Of a stretch of DNA of 64,000 nucleotides, positions 15,383-54,187 are shown one piece after another. Source of the DNA: Hyaloraphidium curvatum SAG 235-1. Taxonomy: Eukaryota; Fungi; Monoblepharomycota. The translations under genes and the position numbers were made by a program. The number at the start of each line of letters is the position of its first letter. Positions within the stretch are counted from its first letter, which is position 1. The DNA is taken from NCBI GenBank assembly GCA_025558095.1, contig JAIVFI010000014.1, positions 496,001-560,000 of the forward strand, written 5' to 3'. A model generated the notes under the pieces. It searched no databases and was not told the DNA's origin. It saw only the letters and a list, made by a program, of their open reading frames with translations.

Positions 15383-17912
15383 GTGCTGACCTCTCCGCGG
15401 CCAGGTCAAGCAGTCACGCCCGGAGGGCTCTCGTGCGAGGCCCTGGAGGACGCTGCGGCATGCGCCAAAGAGCCAGTGCCCGGAACGCCGGGCGACGAGG
15501 ACAACGCCACCAAGCCCCATCGGCTCCCTCCGCCCGAAGCCGAGGAGGACGCGGAGGAGTGCGCCCGCAACAAGCCGGTCACGGCTCGCGTGGTGCCGAA
15601 CCCCGACACCACGACTCCGCGCGCGGCCAAGTTCATCGCCCGCCGCGTCCTCACGGACGGGTCTTTGGGCGACGAACTGGATATCGAGGACGTATGCCTG
15701 GTCGCGGCCGAGTACGCCATTAACTACCGCGAACGGGAGCGCTTCATCAGCTGGTGCAAACGGCAGTTCGGAAAACGCCACCTGAAGTGCTTCGACTGCG
15801 GAAAGTTGGTGGTCACGGTGGCGGAGCTCGTGAAACACTTCCGTACCTCGTGCAAAAAGAACCCGCTGAAGGAGAGACCAAAGAGGAAGGAGAGTAGGTA
15901 CCCGGAGCTTACTCAGGTCCGAAGCCGCCCTGATTGCACCCCATTTCAGAAGCGGTGAAACCCCGAGCGTCTCGAAAGAAGTCGGAGCAACCCCGATCCG
16001 AGCACGCCGTGAGCAAGACCGAATCTGCCTCCCCCAAGGAGGGTGCACGGGGACGGCAAAAGTTCTTCACGGACAGCCCCGACCAGCTCGCCACGGATCT
16101 CGCGGCAGCTCCCGCAGAGTGTTTCGCTGCGGACGGGGGCTTCCGTGCGGACTCCTCCGCCCCGTCGTCCCCGTTCCTGCTGCAGGTGCTGTGGCCACCT
16201 GCGATCCCATCCTCGTTGCTGACCGGCACCCGCAGCACGGCCCCGGCGGCGCGGCGCAGCACCAGATACAGAGTCTGCCCATCGTCGCACCGCAGCACGA
16301 CTTGCAGGGCCACCTCGCCTCCGCACGCAAGCTCGATTCGACAACGATCGACAGCTGGCTCTCCGATCCGCCGCGAACGGTTCCTGGATTCCCTGCGGAC
16401 CCTCGCGCAATGCCGTTCCTGTTCCCGCCGCAGGTGCTAGGGCCGCCTGCGACCCCAACCCCGTTGCTGATCGTCATCCGCAGCGCGTCCCAGGTTTCGA
16501 TGAAGAGCAGCAGATGCAGCAGGCCAACTTCGCCCTCGCAACCCAGTTCAACTTGCCCACGTTCGGCAACCGGATCCCCGACGGGATCCACTTTCAGCAT
16601 CTGTTGCAGCTTCCTCTGGCAGCCCCGTCCACCTCTGCCGGCGCCCGCCCGGAGAATGCTGTCTCGCACCCCGCCGGCGTTCCGAGCCGCCAGCACCCGG
16701 GCATTGTCCCTGAGCAAGGATTCCAGGACGATTCGGACCTAGGGCGTGACTGGGAAACCAGCGAATACGAAGGTGAGCAGCTCAACCGTTCTCTGCGTCG
16801 AACGTTTGAACGCTGACTCGGTTCGAAAGACGAGTTCGTCGAACTGCACGAAAGGCGGATTCGGACGGGGCTTGCCAGTCGCACGGTGGCCATGTTCTTC
16901 CCGACGGAGGCGCCAAGGCTTTCCCCGCCGAGCCCCACAGGGATCGACCTCTCCCTCGGCGGCACCGAATTCTCCGACGGCTCCGACCTCTCCGGTGGAT
17001 TTGACTCCTCCGACGGCGTCGGCTCCTTTGACGCCTACCCCGCATTCACGCAAGCCTCGCAGCAGGAGCAGCACTCCTCCGCCACCCTGTGCTTTCCGGG
17101 CGACGCGCAGCAAATCGCCGCTGCGACGGCGGCAGCGCTTGGTTTCTCCGTCGACAACCACATCCTCGGCGGCACAAACATGAATGGCCCAATCCCCGAC
17201 GGCTTCGGCCACTTCAGCGACTCTTCAGCGGCGTTGACCCCTTCGACGGCATCCAATCCTTCGACGGCATCGACCCTCTTCAGCGGCACCAACCGGGCTG
17301 ACATCCAACACCTACACCAAGCATCCCCGCAGCCCGCGCTTCAAGTGCTGCATCTCCCTGCCGCTGCTCCGTTCGAAGGAGACGTCATCCTCGGCCGCTT
17401 CGACCCCTTGCTCGGCATCGGCGCGGCATCGGTGCAGCCCGCGCATCAAGGTCAGCAAATCCTGACCACCCCGCTGGCCGACGCCAGCGCGGTACCCGCC
17501 CTGTGGCTCGACGCCGCCGTGAGAGCAGCTTCGGGGCTACCCTGGCCGGCTGGGCAAGCAATCCGGGGCTTCGTGGGTCTTTTGCCTTCTCAGGGGAACG
17601 GCAACCCGCAGCCGCACGAAGGTGAGAACTGACAGCTTTTGGCTACGAGCCCGAAGACTGAACCATTCTGCAGGCGAGGATGTTGGCTCAGCGGGGCTAG
17701 GAAATCCTCTTTCTGACTACGAAGACTTCACTGCTCAGAGCATGATGCCCTTGGGTGTACTAAACTTCATGTCGCCGGACCTCGCTGCGCAGCTGTCGGG
17801 CGGCGCGGAGCCCGACTATCTCGACGATTTCTTCTTATTCCTGCCGGCACAGGTGGATGGGGAAGACGATCTACCGGCGAGGTTGCCGAAGCAGCGGAAG
17901 GCGGCCCAGTGA
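15383..17912 (+). CDS. Lineage-specific C2HC zinc-finger protein, copy B (multi-exon, long low-complexity C-terminus)
   Basis: ARVVPNPDTTTPRAAKFIARRVL..SLG and CFDCGKLVVTVAELVKHFRTSC, paralogous to 504-1115, followed by S/P/Q/D-rich ORFs 16514-17912 on the same strand. Confidence 0.45.
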
Positions 17913-41257: not shown

Positions 41258-42432
41258 ATGTCCTGGAGCTCGTTCGACGAGGGCGCGTTCGTGGCCGAGC
41301 TCGAGCGCATCCTCGACGCCGCGAGCGGGGCTTCCGATGCCCTGCTGGCCCTCGTCCGGGCGGGCCCGACGAGGCCCGAGCGCATCTCCGGCGGTTTCTG
41401 GGAACCGGAAGCGGAGCCGGCGAGCGAGGCGGCCGAAATGGCGAAGGTCGCGCTCGGCCAGGCAAATGTCCTCTTGAGAGGTTTGGACAAAGAGGACGAC
41501 GAGGACAGCCCGGCCCCCCTCCGTGCCAAGCTGGGGCCTTTCTTTGCTGACGGTCGTCATGCCGTCGAGAGCGGCCAGCCGCCGCCGGAGCTGGTGCAGC
41601 GCATCTACGGGCGGGTCTTCCACCGGGTTCTGCTCCTGGGGCGTAGCTACATGGAGGCGTACCCCGATCCGGCCTCCGGAGGAAGTGGTCGTTTCCTACT
41701 ATGGATCAGCTGCTGGATCAGATCGTAGGGGACGAGTTTGCTTCCCCCCTGAGTCCCGGCTTCAGGATCGAGCCGTTCGAATCCCTCGTTTGGAGCCCAT
41801 TGCTCTGCGCCAGGTCGCTGATGAGGGCCGCAGGAATGGCGTCATCCCCGCCTCTGAAACGTCGCCTGGCGGAGGACACGGATCTGCTCGAATCCGGACC
41901 TTCTGGAACTGCTTTCGATCGAGCCGTGGCCTTCGGAGGCGCCAAACGAAGCGAACGGTGCGGCTTTCGACTTCACTTGGGACATGATGACGGATCCCCT
42001 TGCTGTGGCCCTGGAGCGGTCCGGTCCTTGGAGGCGGCGGTTGCATGCGCAGATGATGGAGGGCATCGCTGGGACCCGCCGCGAGATCCCGTCACTGTGG
42101 CTCGAGGAAATGGTGCGGAAGCTGCTGGACTCGGTGACGGCGGCAAAACGGCGGCACGAAGTGGGCACCCCCATTACCAACCTCTGGGGGATTGCCGCGT
42201 ACCTGTTCAAAGCTGTGATGCACAGCGAGCGGGAAGCGTGCTTCAGGATCACCTTCGACAGCCTCACCCCCGCAACGGATTGCTGCGATCGGTGCGGGAG
42301 GGCGGAGGGGGACGTGCAGTTGAAGCGGTGCGGGCGGTGCCGATGGCGAGGTACTGCAGCACCGACTGCCAGCGCGCGCATTGGCCGGAGCAGGAGCACA
42401 AGGCCACCTGCGTGCCGAGGGAAGACAAGTAA
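41258..42432 (+). pseudogene. MYND zinc-finger protein gene, frameshifted
   Basis: MYND motif CDRCG..LKRCGRC / RYCSTDCQRAHW..HKATC is split across frames near 42343; further frame changes near 41700 and 41950 lack obvious intron signals. Confidence 0.65.
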
Positions 42433-42662
42433 TCTATCTGGGGAGCAATGGGGACGGAAAATCGCATCCACTATTGGAAAGCGATGTGTTGATCGTTGAC
42501 AGCTCCTTCCTGCGTGCCGCCTCCAACGCCAGAGGAACGACCCCACGGAAGCTAAAGCGCCAAAAAGTGTCGAAACGACACCGCACGCCCTCTAAGAGAT
42601 AGAGTCTGTTAAAGCGGGGCTTGTCCAGGGTATGTTTCCACGGGGACAACCCCATTTTCGCA

Positions 42663-42955
42663 CCATCACCCACCTCCGACGCCGATCACCTCCCAAACCC
42701 ACCCACTGCACGATTCCAAGACCCTAGGTGTTGCGGACGGAGCAACGAGGTGTGGATTAGGTTAGGGCAGCGTCGGCACGAGGGCGACGGTGGCCGATCG
42801 CACCCCCGGCCAACCCCTCTGCAGAGCGGCCCCAGCCCCCCCGAGGTGCCCATCCACCCTCTAAAGCATCGCCAAACTGTCGGAATGGCGCAGTGGTCTA
42901 CCGCGGGAGAATTTTGCCTGAATTTAGGCTTCGGCCGGTCCTAGCTACCCACCAT
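42663..42955 (+). repeat. Left arm of inverted repeat (tRNA-Ser upstream flank, 5' half and degenerate intron)
   Basis: 42663-42910 is the reverse complement of 49049-49296 (no mismatch seen by eye); 42911-42955 is a diverged copy of the tRNA intron. Confidence 0.95.
42879..42955 (+). pseudogene. Truncated tRNA-Ser pseudogene (5' half; anticodon deleted; no T-arm or B-box)
   Basis: GTCGGAATGGCGCAGTGGTCTACCGCGGGAGA is identical to the tRNA 5' half; TTAGA is missing; homology stops at the intron end. Confidence 0.85.
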
Positions 42956-43081
42956 TTTGCCTTCTGATCGGTGACTAGATGGACTCGCGATGTTGGCTCC
43001 ACCGAACCGCCAACGACGCGTCGAACTGTCGCTCGCGAACCTCCCCGACTCTCACCTTTCTGCCACCGTGACCCCGCGTCA

Positions 43082-44266
43082 ATGGAGCCCACCGCAGTCG
43101 CCGTGCCTGCCCCCACGCGCTGGCGGGACGCGTCGCCGCGGGCCGGGGCAGGCGACGCCTCCTCGGACGGACCGAAGCTGCCGCCAGAGATCCTCCTGCT
43201 CGTCATGGAAAACCTACGGGCCCGCGGACTGAAGCGCTCGCTTTCGAACTGCTCTCCACGTGCTGGGATGTGCTGCGCCTGGGCATCGGGGTGCTCATGC
43301 GCGCGGTCGGTATTCCTGGTGCACGGGAAGGAAGGGCTTACGAGGCACTCGACGGGCTTCTCTCGGACTCTTTGAGACTCGACAAGCTGCGGAAAGTCAT
43401 GAAGCTGACCATTACCGTAGGTGGAGGTCCTGCGCAGGTCCGCACCCCACTTGCAGGAGCTGTCGATGGAGCTGCTGGAGCCGAGCGAATTTGACCTCAG
43501 ACTATTGTGGACGGCTCTCCGAGGCGCTAGAGGCCTGATCAGCTTCCATCTCCTTCATCACTGTGATCTCCGCACGATGTCTCATTTCGGACTCGATGCA
43601 GGCCCATATCTCCCCCTTTTAAGGCACCTGGACTCATTGGACTCTCTGAGGGAGATCAGCCTCGCCACCAAATACGCTTGGATCTGGCGGTTACCCGATG
43701 AGTCGCAGCTTTTTAGCTGGCCAGATGCGCTTCTCCGCTTCTCTCGGCTCCCAAGTCTCCTCGTTCGGCTCACGACCAGCCACAAACTCGACCCCTGGCT
43801 GCGCACGAACAGGTTCTGCAACGTCGAGGATCTTCACTTTTTCAACGAGGAGGTCGAGGACATGGACAAGCTTCGCCGGATCTGCGCCTCCTTCCCTCGG
43901 CTCCGGTCTCTGGAATTCTCGCAGACCGAACAGCCTGCAGGCACGGCGATTCTGGCGGACTTCTCTTCCATTCGGTTTCATTGCCTCGAGCAGCTCACCA
44001 TCCGATACTGCTATCTGGGACTGAATCCGATGCTCTTCCCCGCGGTCAAAACCGCGATCGAAGAATCGGGAGTACGGATCACGCTGGAGCCCCTATGGGA
44101 GTGTTTGAACTGGGAAACGCTCGAGTCGGCCCAGGCTCTCAAGGCGGAGGAAGACTTCTGGCTTGGAGTCCCAGGCGTCCACTTTGATGCATACGGTGCG
44201 CACAGCAGAGAAGGTTTCGACCCTTGGCAGGAGGAGTTTGAGCGCTATGCCAGCACTTCTGAATAG
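43082..44266 (+). pseudogene. F-box-like/LRR-like protein paralog 1, two apparent frameshifts
   Basis: KLPPEILLLVMENL F-box-like start; frames switch near 43243 and 43420; aligns with paralog 46048-47207 (LLSTC, LFP.V..AI...G..., E..FW). Confidence 0.65.
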
Positions 44267-44375
44267 ATTGAGCCGCCCATTCGGTCGATTCTTTTGCATA
44301 GATCGGATTCACGGGGCCGGAGTACCGGTCGAGCGGACTGTCTCCCAACTTGCGACCCATACCAGCATTCCGCCA

Positions 44376-45962
44376 ATGCCAGACCTCATCACGGTCCGCG
44401 AAGCGACGTGGTCCGTCATGCGCCAGTACGGCATGACCACCGTCTTCGGCAACCCGGGCTCGACAGAGCTCGGCCTGTTCCTGGGATGGCCAGCCGATTT
44501 CCGCTACGTTCTCGGCCTCCAGGAGAGCGTAGCAGTCGGCATGGCGGACGGATACGCGCAGGCGACCGGCAACGCGAGCTTCGTCAACCTGCATTCCGCC
44601 GCGGGGGTCGGACACGCGATGGGCAATATATTCACCGCCTTCAAGAACAAGACCCCAATGGTGGTCACGGCCGGACAGCAGGCCCGCTCCCTTCTTCCTT
44701 TCGACCCGTTCCTCTACAGTGCGCAGGCCACGGAGCTCCCTCGCCCTTACGTAAAGTGGAGCGTGGAGCCGGCGCGCGCCGAGGACGTTCCGCTTGCGAT
44801 TGCGCGCGCGTATCACCTTGCCATGACGCCGCCGCGCGGGCCGGTGCTCGTTTCCGTTCCTGCGGATGATTGGTCGGCAATGACCGAGCCCGTGGAACCT
44901 CGCAAAGTCAGCCGGCACCTGCGGCCCGATCCCGCTCTCCTGGCAGAGATTGGAGACGCGCTCGACAGCTCCCTGCGGCCGGCCTTCGTCGTCGGGGCGG
45001 CCGTCGATCGCGATGGTGCCTTCGACCAGGCGGTCGCGCTCGCGGAACGCCACCAGGCGCGGGTTTGGACGGCCCCGCTGAGCGGACGCTGCAGCTTCCC
45101 CGAAGGCCATTCCCTGTTTGCCGGATTCCTGCCGGCGATGCGGGAGCGCATTGTTGCGCTCTTGGACGGGCACGACCTCATCGTCGTTCTCGGGGCTCCG
45201 GCATTCACCTACCATGTCGAAGGATTCGGGCCTCACGTGCCCCCTGGCGCCCGGCTCGTGCAGATCACGGACGATCCGCAGGTGGCAGCTTGGGCACCCG
45301 TCGGGACCTCGGTGGTCTCCAGCTTGCGACTCGCACTGGAAGACCTGCTGGCGCGGCCTGCGCCAACGAAGCGCACCCCCCCTTCAGCGCCCGAACCTCC
45401 TCCCGAGGTGCCATTGCCCACGGGCACGCAACCCATTCCGACAGAATACCTCATGCAGACCCTGGCGAGGGTGCGTGGCCGGGACTCGGTCGTGGTTGAG
45501 GAGGCACCGAGCTCGCGGCCGATCATGCAGAAGCACCTGCCTTTCTTCGCCTCGGGGACCTTCTACACGATGTGCAGCGGCGGACTGGGCCACGGCCTTC
45601 CGGCCGCCGTCGGCGTGGCACTCGCGCGGCCGGGCGTCAAGGTGGTTGCGCTCGTGGGCGACGGTTCCATCATGTACGCGATCCAAGCGCTGTGGAATGC
45701 AGCACAACTGCGGCTGCCCATCACTGTGGTCGTCGTCAACAACGGGAACTATGCAGCCCTGCACCAGTTTGCACCGGTCTTTGGATTCAAGCCTGGCGAC
45801 GAGCTGCCCGGGACCACACTACCGGGGCTCGATTTTGTGGCGCTGGCCGCGGGCCACGGCATGCGGGGCCGGAGGGTGACGGAAGCGGGGGAGTTGGCTG
45901 ACGCGCTGCGCGAGGCGATCGAGTCGAAGGAGCCGGAGCTCGTGGAGGTCGTGGTGGCGTGA
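44376..45962 (+). CDS. mdlC: Benzoylformate decarboxylase (ThDP-dependent), bacterial-like, intronless
   Basis: VFGNPGSTEL, LQE, NLHSAAGVG, TAGQQ, SGGLG and ThDP motif GDGS..Y..QALW..NN are BFD family signatures. Confidence 0.92.
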   Translation: MPDLITVREATWSVMRQYGMTTVFGNPGSTELGLFLGWPADFRYVLGLQESVAVGMADGYAQATGNASFVNLHSAAGVGHAMGNIFTAFKNKTPMVVTAGQQARSLLPFDPFLYSAQATELPRPYVKWSVEPARAEDVPLAIARAYHLAMTPPRGPVLVSVPADDWSAMTEPVEPRKVSRHLRPDPALLAEIGDALDSSLRPAFVVGAAVDRDGAFDQAVALAERHQARVWTAPLSGRCSFPEGHSLFAGFLPAMRERIVALLDGHDLIVVLGAPAFTYHVEGFGPHVPPGARLVQITDDPQVAAWAPVGTSVVSSLRLALEDLLARPAPTKRTPPSAPEPPPEVPLPTGTQPIPTEYLMQTLARVRGRDSVVVEEAPSSRPIMQKHLPFFASGTFYTMCSGGLGHGLPAAVGVALARPGVKVVALVGDGSIMYAIQALWNAAQLRLPITVVVVNNGNYAALHQFAPVFGFKPGDELPGTTLPGLDFVALAAGHGMRGRRVTEAGELADALREAIESKEPELVEVVVA

Positions 45963-46047
45963 GCGACTACAGCGCCGCGTTCAAAGATGTTGGCATGACT
46001 ACAGCTCTCGCGCCACCATTTGTCTGTTGGAGTTCGAGCTAGTTGTC

Positions 46048-47207
46048 CTAGGTCTCACTCGCGGCCCGCCACGAGTTCTCCCACTTCTCCAGCGCCTCGA
46101 AAGCTTTGTCCGCATCTTCCACTTCGGCACCTATTTCCACCCAGAACTGCAGCTCGCTTCTGAGCGCCCGATAGCCTTCGATACGATCTTTGCCAGAGGG
46201 CAGGACGCAGACAAGATCGGTGCCTCCCATGAGACGCACTTTTGTGCCGGCCGCTGCAATTGCCTGCACAACGAGCGGGAACAACTCTGCTTCCAAGTCA
46301 AGCCCGCATCGCAATTCGACGAACTGCAGGCCATTCCATTGAAACCCGACCAAAGCTGAGGTCTCGATTCCGTACTGAACAAAAAGCTCTTTGACCCCGG
46401 GGAAAGTGCTGCGAATGATACCGAGGTCCTCTGCTGAGGAAGGTAGATTGATGTAGTCGTCGTTGCATGCCAGACCCAGGACCTCCACACTCGGGAACGA
46501 TGCTATAGCCCAATCGCTCAGGCTAACTCTCGGGTCCATCAGAGGGTGCGCAGGTGGTTGAAGACGTTGGGAAAAGCAAGGATGGCCTCGGGCCAGGTCG
46601 AGGACCCGCAATCTTCGTAAAAAGACAGCTCGAACGACTCAAAAGTTGGTAAACTCTCCAAGTGCTCCAGTAACTGCACGAAGTCGTCCGCGTCAGTCTC
46701 CTCCGCGGTAGGAGAGTCAACGCTGACCACGCGGAGCTTCGTTGCTCGACAAATGCCCCGCAAGAAACCTGGCACGGAGTCCGGATCCAAAACGCACATA
46801 TGAAGTTCAGCCAGCGAAGGCGCAGCGTTGTCCAGCAGCGCCGCCAAGAGCGGATCCCTCGAGGCGATGGAAACGCGAAACTCGGTGAGGTACTCCAGCT
46901 TGTGAAGTTCGAGTCCGTCCATGAGCAGTCCGCGCCACTTCTCCAGCGGACGGTGTTCGTCAGGGTCGACAACCAGGCGACGGAGCAGGACCTCGATCCC
47001 TAGCGTGAGCAAGCCGCGGCACGTCGAGAGCAGGTTCAGCAGCGAGCGCTTCCGTCCCGCTGGGTTCTCCATGACCAACAGAAGGACTTCCGGAGGCAGG
47101 GACGCGAGAGATGCGATCTTGGGAACAGAGACCTCGTCGCGCCGTGAGGCCAAGGGCGGAGCCCCGGGCGCCTGCTGGGCCGCCACTTTGATGGCGGGCT
47201 CGATCAT
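46048..47207 (-). pseudogene. F-box-like/LRR-like protein paralog 2, one apparent frameshift near 46540
   Basis: SLPPEVLLLVMENP..KRSLLNLLSTC; the C-terminal part in ORF 46048-46611 matches paralog 1. Confidence 0.65.
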
Positions 47208-48286
47208 TTCGAAACGGCACGGCAGAATCGAGGCGACGAGGGCGGCGCAGCGGGCGACAGGCAGTTGTTTTCTCAGTGGAATGCTGGGGGACGTGCGTCC
47301 ATCACAGAAACTCCGATTCGACAACAATTCTCGGCTCGCGAGTCGCAGGTTGGACCACAGGTAATGATTGGCTAGAGTGTAAGGTGCCGTCCCTTTACGG
47401 TCTCGTGGACGGACCACGGTGTGGAGATCGCAACATCGGAGGGCAGTGCCCAAAGCCCAACCATCGTTGGGAGACGGATCCATGCGTCTGGAGAGCGACT
47501 AGACGCCTCGACAATCTTTCGCGGCAGGAGGCACCACATGGCACGGGAATCGGACGTAAACTCGGGGAAAGGGTGCCTGCCGCGTTAGAGTGGAGACAGG
47601 GGCTACCGCGAGGTAGGGTCCCCGTGTCCGCGCGGCCTTCCGGCGCGGCACGCGAACGCGTCTGCGCTAGCGCAGGGCCAGGTAGAGGGAGTATTGAGGC
47701 GGTCCGTCCGGCAACGCGACAAGCGGCCCACGGTGCTCCCGGGCAGGAAGCGGGCTGCATGCTGGGGGACGGACTTCTGCCTCGCGGCCATCGATGCTGG
47801 GCTGGCTTGACCTGCTCGTTTCCGAGCCCATCACTGCAGCTCTCGACCGCAAAGATGTTCTTGAGACAAGTCAAGCATGCTAGTACGGCGGAGCTGCGGA
47901 TCCATCATCGGATTCGAAGTGGTGCTGGACAGCCGCTTACTGTGATCCTTCACTGGCCTTGCCTGGCAGGACCTGCCCTCACCAAACCAGCTGGCACCGA
48001 TAAGGGATCATTACTAGAAAAGGATGACAGAGACAACGATAAAGACCGCCAGATCGTTACCAATCAATGTCACGACTGGATGTGGGGACAATGGCCGGCC
48101 GGCAGCGCTTCGATCGTTCTCGCAGGAGATCGAGATCGACAGGCCGGCCGATCTTTGCCGCAAGCATCCAAAGCACCATCGAGAATTGAAAGAAACGGGC
48201 ATCCGATGTTGGTGCAGTATCGGGGTGCATGTACAAGCAGAGCCGTCTCTTGAGCTGTGAGGCCGGGTGCGTGGGCTAGGTATTGC

Positions 48287-48982
48287 CCCCGGCGCTCGGA
48301 GGGTGCCGTGCGGCCGGCGCCGCGAACGTGGTGCAAAACAGCAAGGAAGGCAAAAGGAACCATTTCGTCGGAAGCAGGATTCGGAACCTGCTGCCCGAGG
48401 AGAGGTCGCATCGGCGCACAGGTGGAGGTGATGGCCCCGGCGCTCGGAGGGTGCCGTGCGGCCGGCGCCGCGAACGTGGTGCAAAACAGCAAGGAAGGCA
48501 AAAGGAACCATTTCGTCGGAAGCAGGATTCGGAACCTGCTGCCCGAGGAGAGGTCGCATCGGCGCACAGGTGGAGGTGATGGCCCCGGCGCTCGGAGGGT
48601 GCCGTGCGGCCGGCGCCGCGAACGTGGTGCAAAACAGCAAGGAAGGCAAAAGGAACCATTTCGTCGGAAGCAGGATTCGGAACCTGCTGCCCGAGGAGAG
48701 GTCGCATCGGCGCACAGGTGGAGGTGATGGCCCCGGCGCTCGGAGGGTGCCGTGCGGCCGGCGCCGCGAACGTGGTGCAAAACAGCAAGGAAGGCAAAAG
48801 GAACCATTTCGTCGGAAGCAGGATTCGGAACCTGCTGCCCGAGGAGAGGTCGCATCGGCGCACAGGTGGAGGTGATGGCCCCGGCGCTCGGAGGGTGCCG
48901 TGCGGCCGGCGCCGCGAACGTGGTGCAAAACAGCAAGGAAGGCAAAAGGAACCACTTCGTCGGAAGCAGGATTCGAACCTGC
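48287..48982. repeat. Tandem array of 148-bp units (4 full plus about 0.7) derived from the tRNA-Ser 3' end and downstream flank
   Basis: Units start at 48287, 48435, 48583, 48731 and 48879; each full unit contains cgtcggaagcaggattcggaacctgc (reverse complement of T-arm plus acceptor strand); the last partial unit runs into the real tRNA. Confidence 0.97.
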
Positions 48983-49080
48983 GCCCTCAGAGAGGAGGAG
49001 ATGGTGGGTAGCTAGGATCGGCCGACGCCAAATTCAGGCTAATTCTAATCTCCCGCGGTAGACCACTGCGCCATTCCGAC
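48958..49080 (-). tRNA. tRNA-Ser(AGA) with a 40-nt intron (49003-49042)
   Basis: Acceptor GTCGGAA/TTCCGAC; anticodon stem GGAGA/TCTCC; TT-AGA-A then intron at 37/38; long variable arm CCTC/GAGG; T-arm GCAGG-TTCGAAT-CCTGC; discriminator G; downstream TTTT. Confidence 0.93.
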
Positions 49081-49296
49081 AGTTTGGCGATGCTTTAGAG
49101 GGTGGATGGGCACCTCGGGGGGGCTGGGGCCGCTCTGCAGAGGGGTTGGCCGGGGGTGCGATCGGCCACCGTCGCCCTCGTGCCGACGCTGCCCTAACCT
49201 AATCCACACCTCGTTGCTCCGTCCGCAACACCTAGGGTCTTGGAATCGTGCAGTGGGTGGGTTTGGGAGGTGATCGGCGTCGGAGGTGGGTGATGG
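49049..49296 (-). repeat. Right arm of the 248-bp inverted repeat
   Basis: Reverse complement of 42663-42910. Confidence 0.95.
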
Positions 49297-49789
49297 GAAG
49301 ATTGAAAGCCTCCCGAGGACAAAACCCCCAGTTCAGCCGCCAAAGTAGGCATACTGTATCTCTCAGGGGCCTATGCAGTTTCATCACGATGTTCGCGCGA
49401 TGCGCAGAAGCGTGTTGGGGCGTTTCGACTTTTCGGACAGGGGGCCTTCCTTCGAAGGGCAGGGACGAGGCGGATATGGGTCCTTTGGCCTGCGGCAGCC
49501 CCACCAGCCGACGCATCTCACGTAGTATCAGCTTCCCAATTTTGTCCGCAGCACCTGAATCTCGACAGCATGCGCTAATGGGGCCGAAAGCCTACTTCCG
49601 TGACTGCGCATGACACCTGGAGATGAAGAAGCCACCGCCGCCGGACAGCGAGAACCCGTCCTACCAGCGCATCCAAAGCTCAGCGGCTCTTGATTTGCGT
49701 AAAAGTACTTCGGATTCACGGGGTCAGGCCCCGTCCGCAAGCGCGGTCTTTGGAACGGCGATTCATCACCGTCCACCAACGAAGTCACG

Positions 49790-51445
49790 ATGTCGTTCGA
49801 CGCGCCTTCGGAGCCTCCCGCGCCGACCGGAGGGGACAGCGACGCGCCGTCGCAGCAGCCTTCATCGGCACCTTCGCGTCCCGCGGACCCGCTGCACTAT
49901 GCAAACGTGCTGTCGCTCGCGGAGAGGGCCCTGGGAAGCGCGCCGCAGGACGCCCTTCCGAGGACCCAGACGGAGCTCGTGGCCGCTGTGCTTCATGCAG
50001 CCATGGTCGCGCTTGGGTTCCGCTGCATCGGCATTGGCGAGGAGGGCGAGCCCGGAGCGGCTGGGGCTGCTGCTGCGCAAGCGGGAGACAGCGGCGCCGA
50101 GCAAGGTCGGGTCGCCTTCTCGCCCCATCTCCCGCCAGATCCACCATCTGACGCGTCCTTTAACCTCCCCTGTCACGTCGCAATGCCGTTATCCGGCCAA
50201 CCTAGACCCAACGATGCCCGCAGGATGGAACACTCAGGCGGCCTACGCGTTTCGGTACCGGCATCCCCAGTCCTCGCTGACATTCCTCGTCAAGTCGTTG
50301 CGGATGGCCGACAGGATCCTCGTTCACGGCATGGCGGTCGAGGTAGGCTTGATCTATGTGCCGGCTCTCTTTGGACATGTCCACAGCTCCACTTTCTGCC
50401 AGGACGGGAAGCTCCGGTCCTTCGAGATCCCGATCTCTACCCACCTCGTTCCTCCTCTTGCGGCAACGTACCCTGTCACGCCCTCCGTACTCTCGGCGCC
50501 TCGCGCTCCGGGCTCCGACTCTCCGCTTCTCGCCTACTTCCGTTCCGCTCAGTCGCTGCAGGACATGCTCAACCTCTTCAAGATCCAGATTGTGCAGCGC
50601 ATCGCACCGGGCCTCCAGAAGGAAGGATACGAGGAAACCGCGGTCGAGTGGGCATTCTCTTCTCTTGGTTTTGGCCCTCTTGGCTCGCTAATGATGATGT
50701 CGCCATTCAGACCACCTGCGACCGGTACGTCCAGCAGCGCGCAACCGCGGCCGCGGCCTGTGGCTCCTCCCTACCCGATCGGCGGTGGCATCCCCGACTA
50801 CCCTCGCAGACCCCCGCCGTACCTACCCGGCCCTGCCTACGGTCCGCGGTTCGGCGGCATCGGCTCACGCGATCTCGATCCTTTCGCGGGAGGATACCCC
50901 GGACCCGGCGGCCTGCGGCTTCCCGGCGGCGGATATGGCCCCATGGGCGGCGGTCCGCCGGGTTTCGGGGGCGGAGGCATGTTCGTCGGCCCCAACGATC
51001 CCATGTTCGGCCGGCGCGACCCGATGGGCGGCAGCTTCGGCTACCCGGAGCCCGGATTCCCGTACCCGGAGCCGGGTCCGCTCGCGGGGCCCGGAGGGAC
51101 GAGGCTGCCGCCGGGAGCGGTCCCGCCGGGCGCGAGGTTCGATCCCATCGTGCCTGGGGCTCCGCCTGGGACGGAAGGTGGAAGCGGGGGAAGGCCGATG
51201 CCTCCGGGATCTTTCCCCGGACCGGGTCGTAGCCTCGGCGGGACGGGACCGGGGCCGGGAAGGACTTTGCCGTGAGTGCCTTTGCATGAGGGAGCCGTTG
51301 TGTCGCGAGGCTGATTGGACGGCAAGTGGGGAGCCGGACAATGATGACGCGCCGCCGCCAGGTGAGCGTGCGCCGCGTTCTCGCCGGACGCCTGGTTTCT
51401 GATCCCCGGCCCCTGACACCAGAATTCGACAACATGTTCACGTGA
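49790..51445 (+). CDS. PSMF1: Proteasome inhibitor PI31 (PSMF1/Fub1), multi-exon
   Basis: ELVAAVLHAAMVALGFR, P.GWN..YAFRY.HPQSSLTFLVK (FP domain), IGSRDLDP, GGGMFVGPNDPMF, PPGARFDP, EPDND. Confidence 0.92.
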
Positions 51446-52117
51446 TGAGCCGATCGTCTTTTGCTCTTCTGTACAGCTTCTTCAACACGGTGTCAAGATA
51501 GAGGATGGAACATAGCAAAGATCAAGGATCAAAATGGCACTCGTTTCTACGCCAGCAGGTCGTGCTCAATCTTCGACCTTTCTCTGAATAGAGCTCCCCT
51601 TGTAGCTGGTTGTAGAATGGAAGATCAGTTGCAATCGCTACAACTTGTGCACCGAACTTGCGTAGTCTCCTTGCCAGTGTTGTCATTCTTGATGGTGAAG
51701 CGCAACTCGGAATCGTCATCGCCCTTCGTCGTGACTGGTTCACCAAAGAGCGTCAGGTCCGACCGGCTCAAGATCTCCGATGCAGCGTTGCGCGGTAGGA
51801 AGCACCTTGCGTTATGGTTCCCGTGCTCTTCGAGCCCTCGGCTTCGCGAACGTGGGCTCAGTCAGGGAGCAGGGGAGGGCGGCAAGGCCTCAATCGCCCA
51901 CCTCCACCGACGGCTACGTACTCGACCTTGTCGCCCTCCTTATAGTCTTGGTTGCTCATCGTTTCTGCGGTTCGAGGTGCAGGCAAAGTTTCGTTTTCAT
52001 CTCAGAGTGATGACGTGTCCCGGCGGAAGGAACTGGCAACCCCGACAATCGGATCAGAACCAAACAATCGTATCAGCATGTAGGCGAGCCCAGCATAGTT
52101 CTATCATGTACAGCATT

Positions 52118-54187
52118 CTAGTTCACGCTCATGTTCTTCACGCCGTCTGCAACCTTTGCCACGTTCGGCTGGCGCATGAGGTCAGCTCCAGTCCACATGG
52201 CGCCGCAACTCCGCCCACACACCTTTTTCGCGCCCCCTGCCTGGGTCGCGGCCTTCAGCTCCGCCGACGTTGCCGTCCTCACGTACGGCACGAACTCCTT
52301 CCCACCCATGAACGGCCGCAGCGGCTCGGGGATCACGAGCCCTTCCGGCGTCTGGTAGTTCTCCACCAGGCAGCACAGCGCGCGCTCCGTCGCCGTCAGT
52401 GTCGAGTTGAGCATGTGGACGAACTTGCGGGAGCCGTCGGCGGCCTGCAGAAGCTGGGTTCAGTCGAGCACAGCGCGGAGCAGGAGATGGCACGAACCGG
52501 CTTCGTCCCGCAGCGGATGTCAAGGCTCCTGCTCTGGTAGTCGGTGCAGTTGGAGCACGACACGAGCTCCTTGTACTCGCACTGGAAGGGGAACCATGCC
52601 TCTAGGTCGTACTTTTTCGCCGCGGCGTTGTTGAGCGCCCCCGACACGATCGCCACGACCCTGTAGGGGATCTTGAGCTTACAAGAGGTGAGCACTAGTT
52701 CCACCAACATCGCCGCCGGCCGGGATGCTCACCGATTTGTAGAATTCCTCGCTGTTGCCAATCATCCTGTCAAACTCCTCCCACGACTTTTCCGGCTCCG
52801 TGATGCAGAACTGCTCCACCTTCTCGAACTGGTGCACCCGGAAAATGCCCCACGTGTCCTTGCCGTGGGCACCTGCCTCTTTCCGGAAGCAGGTCGAGAT
52901 GCCGGCGTACCTGAACGGGTGCGTGAGATCGTGTATCGGCGGTCAGGGCTCGGCGAAACGCACCGCTTCGGGAGCTCCTTGGCCGGGTCGGCAAACACTT
53001 CGTTTGCGTGGAACGCGCTGACGGGCTGCTCCGAGGTCGCAATGAGGTACTTTGCGTCCGCGTCCACGTCGTCCGGGTCCGCCTTGCCGCCCTCGCCGAC
53101 CTTGTAAAGCTCCTCGTCAAACTGCTCCAGCTGCGCCGTCCGCGACATCATCTCGCGCCGCATGAAGAAGGGCGTCCAGAGCTTGGTGTAGCCCTTGGAC
53201 TCGAGGAAACTGAGGCCGTACTGGATCAGGGCGAGGTTGAGGTCCACGCCGATCCCGGTGAGGAAGTAGGCGCGGTGGCCTGCGACCTTGGATCCTGGTT
53301 GCGAAACTCCAATGAGAGGAGATTCCGGCCATTCGGCCAACTGTCCGCCCACCTCGGATGTTGTCGAAGCCGTCCAGCATGTCAAACACCTCGTGGTGGC
53401 TCCTGAGCCCCGTCACGCCCTTGGCGCCGTCCTTGACGGACGCCGAGCCCACGAGCTCCAGTCTCCGCTGCCGTTCCGCCTCCTCCGAACGCCCCTCGGG
53501 CCACCACATCCGGATCAGCGCGTTATCGTCCTCCGTCATCGAGTCCGGCACGGTCTCGTGGACCAGGTTGCCGATCTGCGTGGCCTTTTTGTACAGCTCG
53601 GCCTCGCGCGCGTCGGCGTCCTTGTTCAGCTGGATCTTCTGCTCCTCCAGCGCGTTCTTCTCGGCCTTCAGGTCCCCGGTCTCGTCGGCCCTTTTCTGCT
53701 TCATGAGCTCGCCGATTTGCTTCTGGATGGCGTTGATTTTGCGGTTGACCTGATCGGCCTCGTACCGGGCTGCGGATTGACAAGGGGAGCAGTTAGAGAG
53801 GTCCAAGTTGGAAATCTCCCATGGGTAGCAGAAGGCCGGCGCCGTCCACAGGTGGCGAGGAGTAACCGGCCTTCGGCTTGTCCGGGAGGGAGTCCCCGGC
53901 GTAGACCGAGTGGCACGGTCAATGATCCCCGTCCTCCACCCCTCCAGAAGAGCTCACGGGGCACCAATTCACGCCCAGTCAAGCACTTCTGCGCGCTCGA
54001 ATAGATTCATGGGCCTCCACCGGGCCCCCACGTGCCGCCACTCCTTCCTCAGCTACCGACCTTTCCGCCATTCCTCGTCCATCGTCTTGACGGCATCGAC
54101 GAGTTCCGGCGGGGCGCCACGCTTCCTCTGCGACTCAATGACGGCCTTCAGGCCCTCGGGGTCCCGAATGAGCCCGATGTCGATCAT
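52118..54187 (-). CDS. SES1: Cytosolic seryl-tRNA synthetase, multi-exon
   Basis: N-terminal coiled-coil arm, [78 protein letters not shown]. Confidence 0.97.
53770..54060 (-). other. Long (291 nt), highly base-paired first intron of SerRS; candidate structured RNA
   Basis: GT..CTAAC..CAG intron whose removal restores WRK-ARYE; several nested complementary segments (see findings). Confidence 0.6.

Follow-up and report, generated by a model that had tools for sequence, protein, structure and literature searches.

A tRNA-Ser-anchored inverted repeat in Hyaloraphidium curvatum as a probable old duplication with a recently refreshed core

The perfect inverted repeat that encloses a bacterial-type decarboxylase gene in the fungus Hyaloraphidium curvatum SAG 235-1 is probably best explained by an ancient pair of facing tRNA-Ser genes, a duplication of the block that carried them, and later gene conversion accompanied by turnover of the genes in the interior. 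The locus does not represent a new element. It offers a dated natural experiment within a genome-wide habit: perfect inverted repeats anchored at tRNA genes in this genome need not be young inversions but can be old pairs that conversion has refreshed, and the same refreshing appears to have happened in parallel in a sister block. The data come from one strain and a single assembly (31.9 Mb, 55 contigs). The window, that is, the whole stretch of 64,000 nucleotides analyzed in this work, corresponds to C14:496001-560000; C14 coordinates are those of contig JAIVFI010000014.1, and coordinates without a prefix are those of the window.

Layers of identity at the tRNA-Ser(AGA) locus

The features of the arms and of the tRNA gene are as follows.

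42663..42910, forward strand: left arm, identical core (upstream flank of 216 nt, then tRNA positions 1-32)
49049..49296, reverse strand: right arm, identical core, perfect complement to the left arm
42523..42662, no strand: old outer homology of the left arm, 59% identical to 49297-49436
49297..49436, no strand: old outer homology of the right arm, counterpart of 42523..42662
42879..42964, forward strand: tRNA-Ser pseudogene (left copy), from sequence comparison with the intact gene
48958..49080, reverse strand: complete tRNA-Ser(AGA) gene (Rfam E 1.6e-6; ARAGORN with introns)
48287..48986, reverse strand: 148-bp tandem array of 4.7 copies
47484..48277, no strand: 3' flank common to the tRNA-Ser(CGA) locus, from a sequence match

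The two 248-nt arms (42663-42910 and 49049-49296), for which identity had been predicted, are 100% complementary and lie 6138 nt apart. Both consist of 216 nt of upstream flank and tRNA positions 1-32 and point inward, as stated in the original prediction, which had described each of them as a flank plus the 5' half of a tRNA; the right arm, however, enters a complete tRNA-Ser(AGA) gene. A search over the 31.9-Mb genome found the arm sequence at this locus and no further copy elsewhere, which rules out a dispersed repeat.

The arms are embedded in homology of different ages. Outward of the core, where some similarity had already been noted, homology continues for about 140 nt at 59% identity, with a score that was reached by 0 of 300 shuffles (lengths of 100-150 nt were tested). 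Inward, it continues through the intron at 83% (42911-42955 versus 49001-49048). The core contains 0 differences in 248 positions, corresponding to a divergence below 1.2% at 95%, and the intron part 6 in 48 (Fisher p 1e-5), so the repeat has not aged uniformly. These layers of 59%, 100%, and 83% point to an old duplication whose 248-nt core was homogenized recently, and the inverted pair is, as judged from its sequence, an old duplication with a recently overwritten core. The finding of an identical tract inside older, diverged homology agrees with concerted evolution, and tRNA genes are known to evolve in concert via intergenic conversion (PMC4981973).

The left copy corresponds to the intact gene over the first 32 bases and has then lost about 4 nt of its anticodon loop. 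Its intron is of the AGA type (88% identity with the intron of the intact gene versus 46% with the CGA intron), and a clean 54-nt deletion brings the end of this intron next to a 10-nt terminator stretch that is identical in the intact gene. Since the intron end and the terminator are retained around this clean deletion, the left copy was formerly a full-length gene.

The intact gene is composed of a 5' exon (49080-49043), a 40-nt intron (49042-49003), and a 3' exon (49002-48958); ARAGORN detects it in the intron setting and misses it otherwise. It is apparently the sole AGA gene within its sequence family. Next to the right arm, the predicted tandem array derived from the tRNA 3' part was recovered, and its 148-bp unit comprises an altered tRNA 3' exon, with two 1-nt insertions of which one is in the B box, and the trailer. 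The shared 3' flank is 98% identical to the tRNA-Ser(CGA) locus in the first 225 nt past the array and about 86-88% identical farther out. No coding signal was found in this flank, and the candidate of an orphan gene at this site was rejected for that reason.

The tRNA-Ser(AGA) gene is a mosaic. Its 5' side is identical to the left relic through position 32, and its 3' side is 96-99% identical to the CGA locus over a stretch that comprises the 3' exon, the array, and the 225 nt following the array. In a comparison of the AGA and CGA loci, identity amounts to 57% upstream, about 48-50% in the intron, 95-96% in the exons, and 99% in the first 148 nt downstream; conserved homology of the upstream flanks was rejected, with 16 of 300 shuffles reaching the score. 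Only the anticodon loop and the intron match neither partner. Given that the AGA gene is seemingly present in single copy, selection against loss or change of its anticodon accounts for this unshared segment, for which breaks starting in the anticodon arm would provide an alternative account.

A related case is that of the serine tRNA genes of Schizosaccharomyces pombe, for which intergenic conversion has been reported (Amstutz et al. 1985, cited in PMC4981973). As this case is summarized there, paralogs with different anticodons exchange non-reciprocally, with near-identical exons and diverging introns, which resembles the present locus. Unlike in the case so summarized, the tracts in H. curvatum run hundreds of bases into the flanks and involve inverted relics, and the exchange spares only the anticodon loop and the intron.

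The sister block at C14:468-482 kb

Two genes of the window have counterparts in a paralogous block, which beyond C14:472221 is known from match coordinates alone.

41258..42432, forward strand: MYND-finger gene (zf-MYND E 2.4e-5), frameshifted, outside the left arm
43082..44266, forward strand: F-box/LRR-like gene F1, two frameshifts; its nearest paralog is at C14:479103-480194 and is not F2

The block contains a tRNA-Ser(CGA) gene at C14:468589, which has the same tRNA exons and is located 76 kb away in inverted orientation. Behind this gene come about 21 copies of the 148-bp unit and then the shared flank, which extends to C14:472637. The paralogs of F1 (C14:479103-480194) and of the MYND gene (C14:480753-481953, with matches at C14:480753-480892 and 481843-481953) are found 10-13 kb past tRNA-Ser(CGA); their position, order, and orientation with respect to the tRNA match those of the window genes. 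Between them, at the place that the left arm occupies in the window, is an inverted tRNA relic (C14:480641-480696) that is 89% identical to positions 40-93 of tRNA-Ser(CGA) and has a CGA-type intron. A tandem partial tRNA copy with a small anticodon-loop deletion is also present in this block, at C14:468304.

Each relic thus has the intron type of the gene in its own block, and AGA and CGA introns are about 50% alike; copies within a block resemble each other more than they resemble their positional counterparts in the other block, as is the case in concerted evolution. The two relics are complementary in that the 5' part and the terminator are preserved in the window, and the intron and part of the 3' exon in the sister block. 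By its sequence, the sister-block relic appears to be a second, parallel case of local concerted evolution. Together with the layered identity and the Fisher p of 1e-5, this parallel supports the prediction of an old inverted duplication with arms kept identical by conversion.

The MYND-relic-F-box order common to both blocks indicates that the MYND and F-box genes were already neighbors across the left arm before the arms became perfect; a recent inversion, or acquisition of the interior in a single step, is therefore disfavored. It is in this context that a single recent event has to be considered, in which template switching or a staggered break would have flipped the 6.1-kb interior and left a 248-bp duplication at its ends. 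The perfect identity, the location of the inner end within the tRNA, and the similar arms of 91-97% at tRNA-iMet and tRNA-Thr would be in agreement with such an event. It is nevertheless very unlikely, since older homology flanks the core on both sides, the left copy has a diverged intron and terminator, and the shared gene order implies that the junction between the interior and the MYND side is not new.

The duplication-and-conversion history that we favor would start from an ancestral block with two complete, facing tRNA-Ser genes, arranged as MYND > tRNA > F-box ... < tRNA. An ancient duplication would have placed an inverted copy of the whole block 57-70 kb away, and the two genes that survived would have given rise to the isoacceptors AGA and CGA. 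On the MYND side of each block, the tRNA copy may have decayed by deletion while still exchanging with its local partner. This exchange would be a non-reciprocal recombination, or gene conversion, that was probably triggered when forks stalled or the DNA broke at the tRNA gene; replication forks have been found to pause at tRNA genes (PMC8194067). The latest exchange would have covered the 216-nt flank and the 5' exon and ended at the anticodon loop, generating the perfect 248-bp arms, and the CGA locus may have been the partner in another recent, separate exchange that homogenized the array together with the 3' exon and no less than 225 nt past the array. Any conversion tract spanning the anticodon of this single-copy tRNA would have been removed by selection or blocked by heterology.

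Interior genes and the origin of mdlC

The remaining genes of the interior and the gene that delimits the block are the following.

44376..45962, forward strand: mdlC, benzoylformate-decarboxylase-like, 528 aa, intact, intronless, single copy
46048..47207, reverse strand: F-box/LRR-like gene F2, one frameshift; best paralog at C12:134482, on another contig
49790..51275, forward strand: PI31 proteasome-regulator gene, a single-copy host gene that bounds the block

The interior had been described as an intact mdlC-like gene between two paralogous F-box genes. This holds for mdlC, which is intact and intronless, but both F-box genes are frameshifted and they are not sister paralogs. Translated across the frameshifts with X, and with spliced models left unjoined, F1 and F2 are 27% identical, and each has closer paralogs elsewhere in the genome, where the family comprises at least 20 F-box/LRR-like genes. 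The mirror arrangement therefore does not date from the arms, and the view of F1 and F2 as mirror products of the inverted duplication had to be abandoned. A word search with a 281-aa piece of F1, for which length limits apply, found no F1 homolog outside its own genome. Clustering of F-box genes by tRNA genes was not significant when the two ascertained loci were left out (2/15, p 0.07).

The mdlC product gives a full-length match (E 1e-127) and has three TPP domains. It shares these domains with MdlC of the PDB 1BFD family, and the aligned residues are kept, at positions that we take to be S26, E28, E47, H70, and H281 of the Pseudomonas putida enzyme. It differs from MdlC in being encoded on a eukaryotic chromosome and in belonging to a clade of uncharacterized Burkholderiales-like proteins. 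The product is accordingly termed benzoylformate-decarboxylase-like, with a substrate that is predicted.

Clear signs of a bacterial origin emerge for this gene. Its product is 80% identical to bacterial proteins and is nested among bacterial homologs (SH-aLRT 97-98), with wider relatives mostly from Burkholderiales; on bacterial contigs, the checked members of the clade adjoin LysR and TctC genes in operons. At the DNA level, the similarity to donor-like relatives is 76% and confined to the coding sequence, and no bacterial DNA was found at the locus beyond it. The GC3 of mdlC, 0.79, equals the host value, that of its bacterial kin being 0.94, and the gene is located on a 752-kb contig among intron-bearing genes; neighboring host genes include those for PI31 and a seryl-tRNA synthetase. 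The host-like GC3 and the restriction of donor similarity to the coding sequence indicate a real and not very recent transfer, and bacterial nesting, embedding in host DNA, and the lack of close eukaryotic kin are in line with this. The sequence data identify mdlC as a genuine, ameliorated transfer from a Burkholderiales-like bacterium. Such a transfer suggests that this aquatic fungus may use aromatic 2-keto acids. No paper on it was found in the literature.

According to the match coordinates, mdlC and F2 are absent from the sister block, where other DNA is found in that place, so they were either gained in the window block or lost from the sister block. Neither gene shows a sign of connection to the arm ends, and in the proposed history this gain or loss would have been independent of the arms. 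The interior is a turnover zone for decaying accessory genes.

The frameshifts in three neighboring genes are possibly sequencing errors, and the 100% identity, or the left arm, might be an artefact of assembly or polishing, perhaps in part. This is highly improbable, as the left copy extends into a diverged intron, a terminator, and outer homology, unlike a collapsed or misplaced copy, and as mdlC is intact over 1.6 kb between frameshifted genes. Moreover, the paralogous relic and the arms of 85-97% at other tRNAs represent a range of ages.

Mobile elements and partial tRNA copies across the genome

As had been predicted, no recombinase is visible: neither a recombinase nor a transposase was found in the block ORFs, and there is no PF00589 match to a tyrosine integrase genome-wide. 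No target-site duplication was detected around the arms or mdlC, the best match being 6 nt. A TIR transposon or Pack-type element was ruled out by the unique arm, the absence of a target-site duplication, and the homology that continues outside the arms. Dada transposons are also tied to split tRNA genes and occur in a fungus, but they part the 5' and 3' pieces of one tRNA gene in direct orientation, and have a DDE transposase and a 6-7 bp target-site duplication without long inverted arms (PMC3706591). This candidate was ruled out given that the ORFs contain no transposase and the right tRNA is intact.

Long perfect inverted repeats are a substrate for ordinary homologous crossing over, and the 248-bp perfect inverted identity 6 kb apart is such a substrate. 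Ordinary homologous recombination may thus, on rare occasions, invert the interior. An invertible cassette that flips appreciably often, as suggested in the original prediction, is however most improbable: besides the lack of a recombinase in the block ORFs and of a PF00589 match in the genome, the arms are host flank and not short recombinase sites, and mdlC lies wholly inside, so flipping brings no promoter onto it. The orientation is also the same as that frozen in the paralogous block, which is weak evidence with a 50% probability of arising by chance.

In bacterial tRNA islands, a foreign gene likewise lies between terminal copies of a tRNA, one intact and one partial. Their att repeats, in contrast, are direct and derived from the tRNA 3' end; direct attL/attR copies of the tRNA end are absent here, where the repeats are inverted and 216 of 248 nt are upstream flank. 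As there is also no integrase, target-site duplication, or bacterial DNA beyond mdlC, the proposed resemblance to such islands is not supported. The notion of a tRNA capture site survives loosely, inasmuch as transferred and accessory genes accumulate next to tRNA genes. The locus appears to be an old rearrangement hot spot and not a mobile or switchable cassette.

Links between tRNA genes and duplication extend to the whole genome. A partial copy within 1.5 kb was identified at 15 of 30 other tRNA genes, 11 of them direct and 4 inverted. The control frequencies, from positions not matched for intergenic DNA, were 1 of 102 for positions in the window and 20 of 240 for shifted positions at those loci. 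With these unmatched controls, the enrichment has p values of 1e-10 (versus window positions) and 1e-7 (versus shifted positions). To our knowledge, partial self-copies at half of the sampled tRNA genes are far above anything known from yeasts. No description of the locus or of this habit was found in the literature, and no relative sharing the tRNA 5' half was detected in JGI metagenomes. With half of its tRNA genes shedding partial copies, this eukaryote is well suited to tests of tRNA-driven gene gain. Yeast tRNA genes are enriched for breakpoints, ends of segmental duplications, and gene gains (Gordon et al. 2009, PMC2675101), and, as in yeast (PMC2675101; PMC8194067), accessory or gained genes adjoin tRNA genes and duplications end there. 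The present locus differs in lacking LTR retrotransposon involvement and in the frequency of partial self-copies.

The ends of the partial copies genome-wide fall between the A box and the B box. This is compatible with a nuclease of a selfish locus that cuts the anticodon arm of tRNA-Ser, with repair from the relic on the 5' side and from the CGA locus on the 3' side, and with relics that bear end-joining scars. Both homogenized tracts stop at the anticodon/intron, and small anticodon-loop deletions are present in the left copy and in the copy at C14:468304. Such a nuclease is unlikely, considering that the block has no nuclease-like ORF, that no coding signal is seen in the flank common to the two Ser loci, and that selection on the single-copy anticodon accounts for the same tract ends. 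It is similarly doubtful that the tRNA genes of this fungus, most of them present in one copy, are cut in the anticodon arm by a dedicated, possibly selfish isoacceptor-specific nuclease, with nearby partial copies serving as repair templates and with the breaks admitting bacterial genes like mdlC. Among the inverted partial copies, that at tRNA-iMet extends over 364 nt at 97% identity and that at tRNA-Thr over 304 nt at 91%.

Partial copies beside tRNA genes

The 31 tRNA genes recovered genome-wide are nearly all different isoacceptors, suggesting a mostly single-copy tRNA set. The tRNA-Ser(CGA) gene has, in addition, a direct partial copy 285 nt upstream (positions 468178-468359 of contig C14 in the genome assembly, G000; L038:1375-1556), which comprises 126 nt of flank and 58 nt of the gene at 98% identity and has lost 1 nt of its anticodon loop. 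At the tRNA-iMet locus (L010, G000:C18:269664-272735), a 364-nt inverted repeat (97%) starts from tRNA position 41 and has a 303-aa orphan ORF inside it. Inverted partial copies of tRNA-Thr(AGT), tRNA-Lys(CTT), and tRNA-Cys were also observed (loci L012, L013, and L020; 91%, 86%, and 85%, respectively), each 0.2-1.3 kb from its gene.

F-box genes and the paralogous blocks

F-box family members lie in the vicinity of three tRNA-Ser genes, and the enrichment of this family near tRNA genes was not significant once the two ascertained loci were removed (2/15; p 0.07). Members other than F1 and F2 were noted at G000:C22:73770-76377, 9 kb away from tRNA-Ser(GCT), and at C11:315743-316890, 14 kb away from a tRNA-Gly. 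The two paralogous blocks (C14:468589-481953 and window 41258-49296) face each other across some 55 kb of host genes, an arrangement resembling a large, old inversion whose ends were duplicated.

Neighbouring genes and other possible duplications or acquisitions

Only 109 nt (window 44267-44375) separate the stop of the frameshifted F-box/LRR-like gene F1 from the start of the benzoylformate-decarboxylase-like gene mdlC on the same strand, and a promoter within F1, or the F1 transcript, may serve mdlC. A second TPP-enzyme gene (L034, G000:C22:204111-205616), apparently intronless, with an open frame of 580 codons and 29% identity to mdlC, could be another bacterial acquisition. Upstream of tRNA-Ser(AGA), at a distance of about 2.5 kb and with the same strand orientation, is the seryl-tRNA synthetase gene (window 51600-54000). 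Elsewhere in the window, several collinear inverted matches (485-1085 versus 15548-16267; 73-83%) point to an older pair of inverted genes separated by 15 kb.
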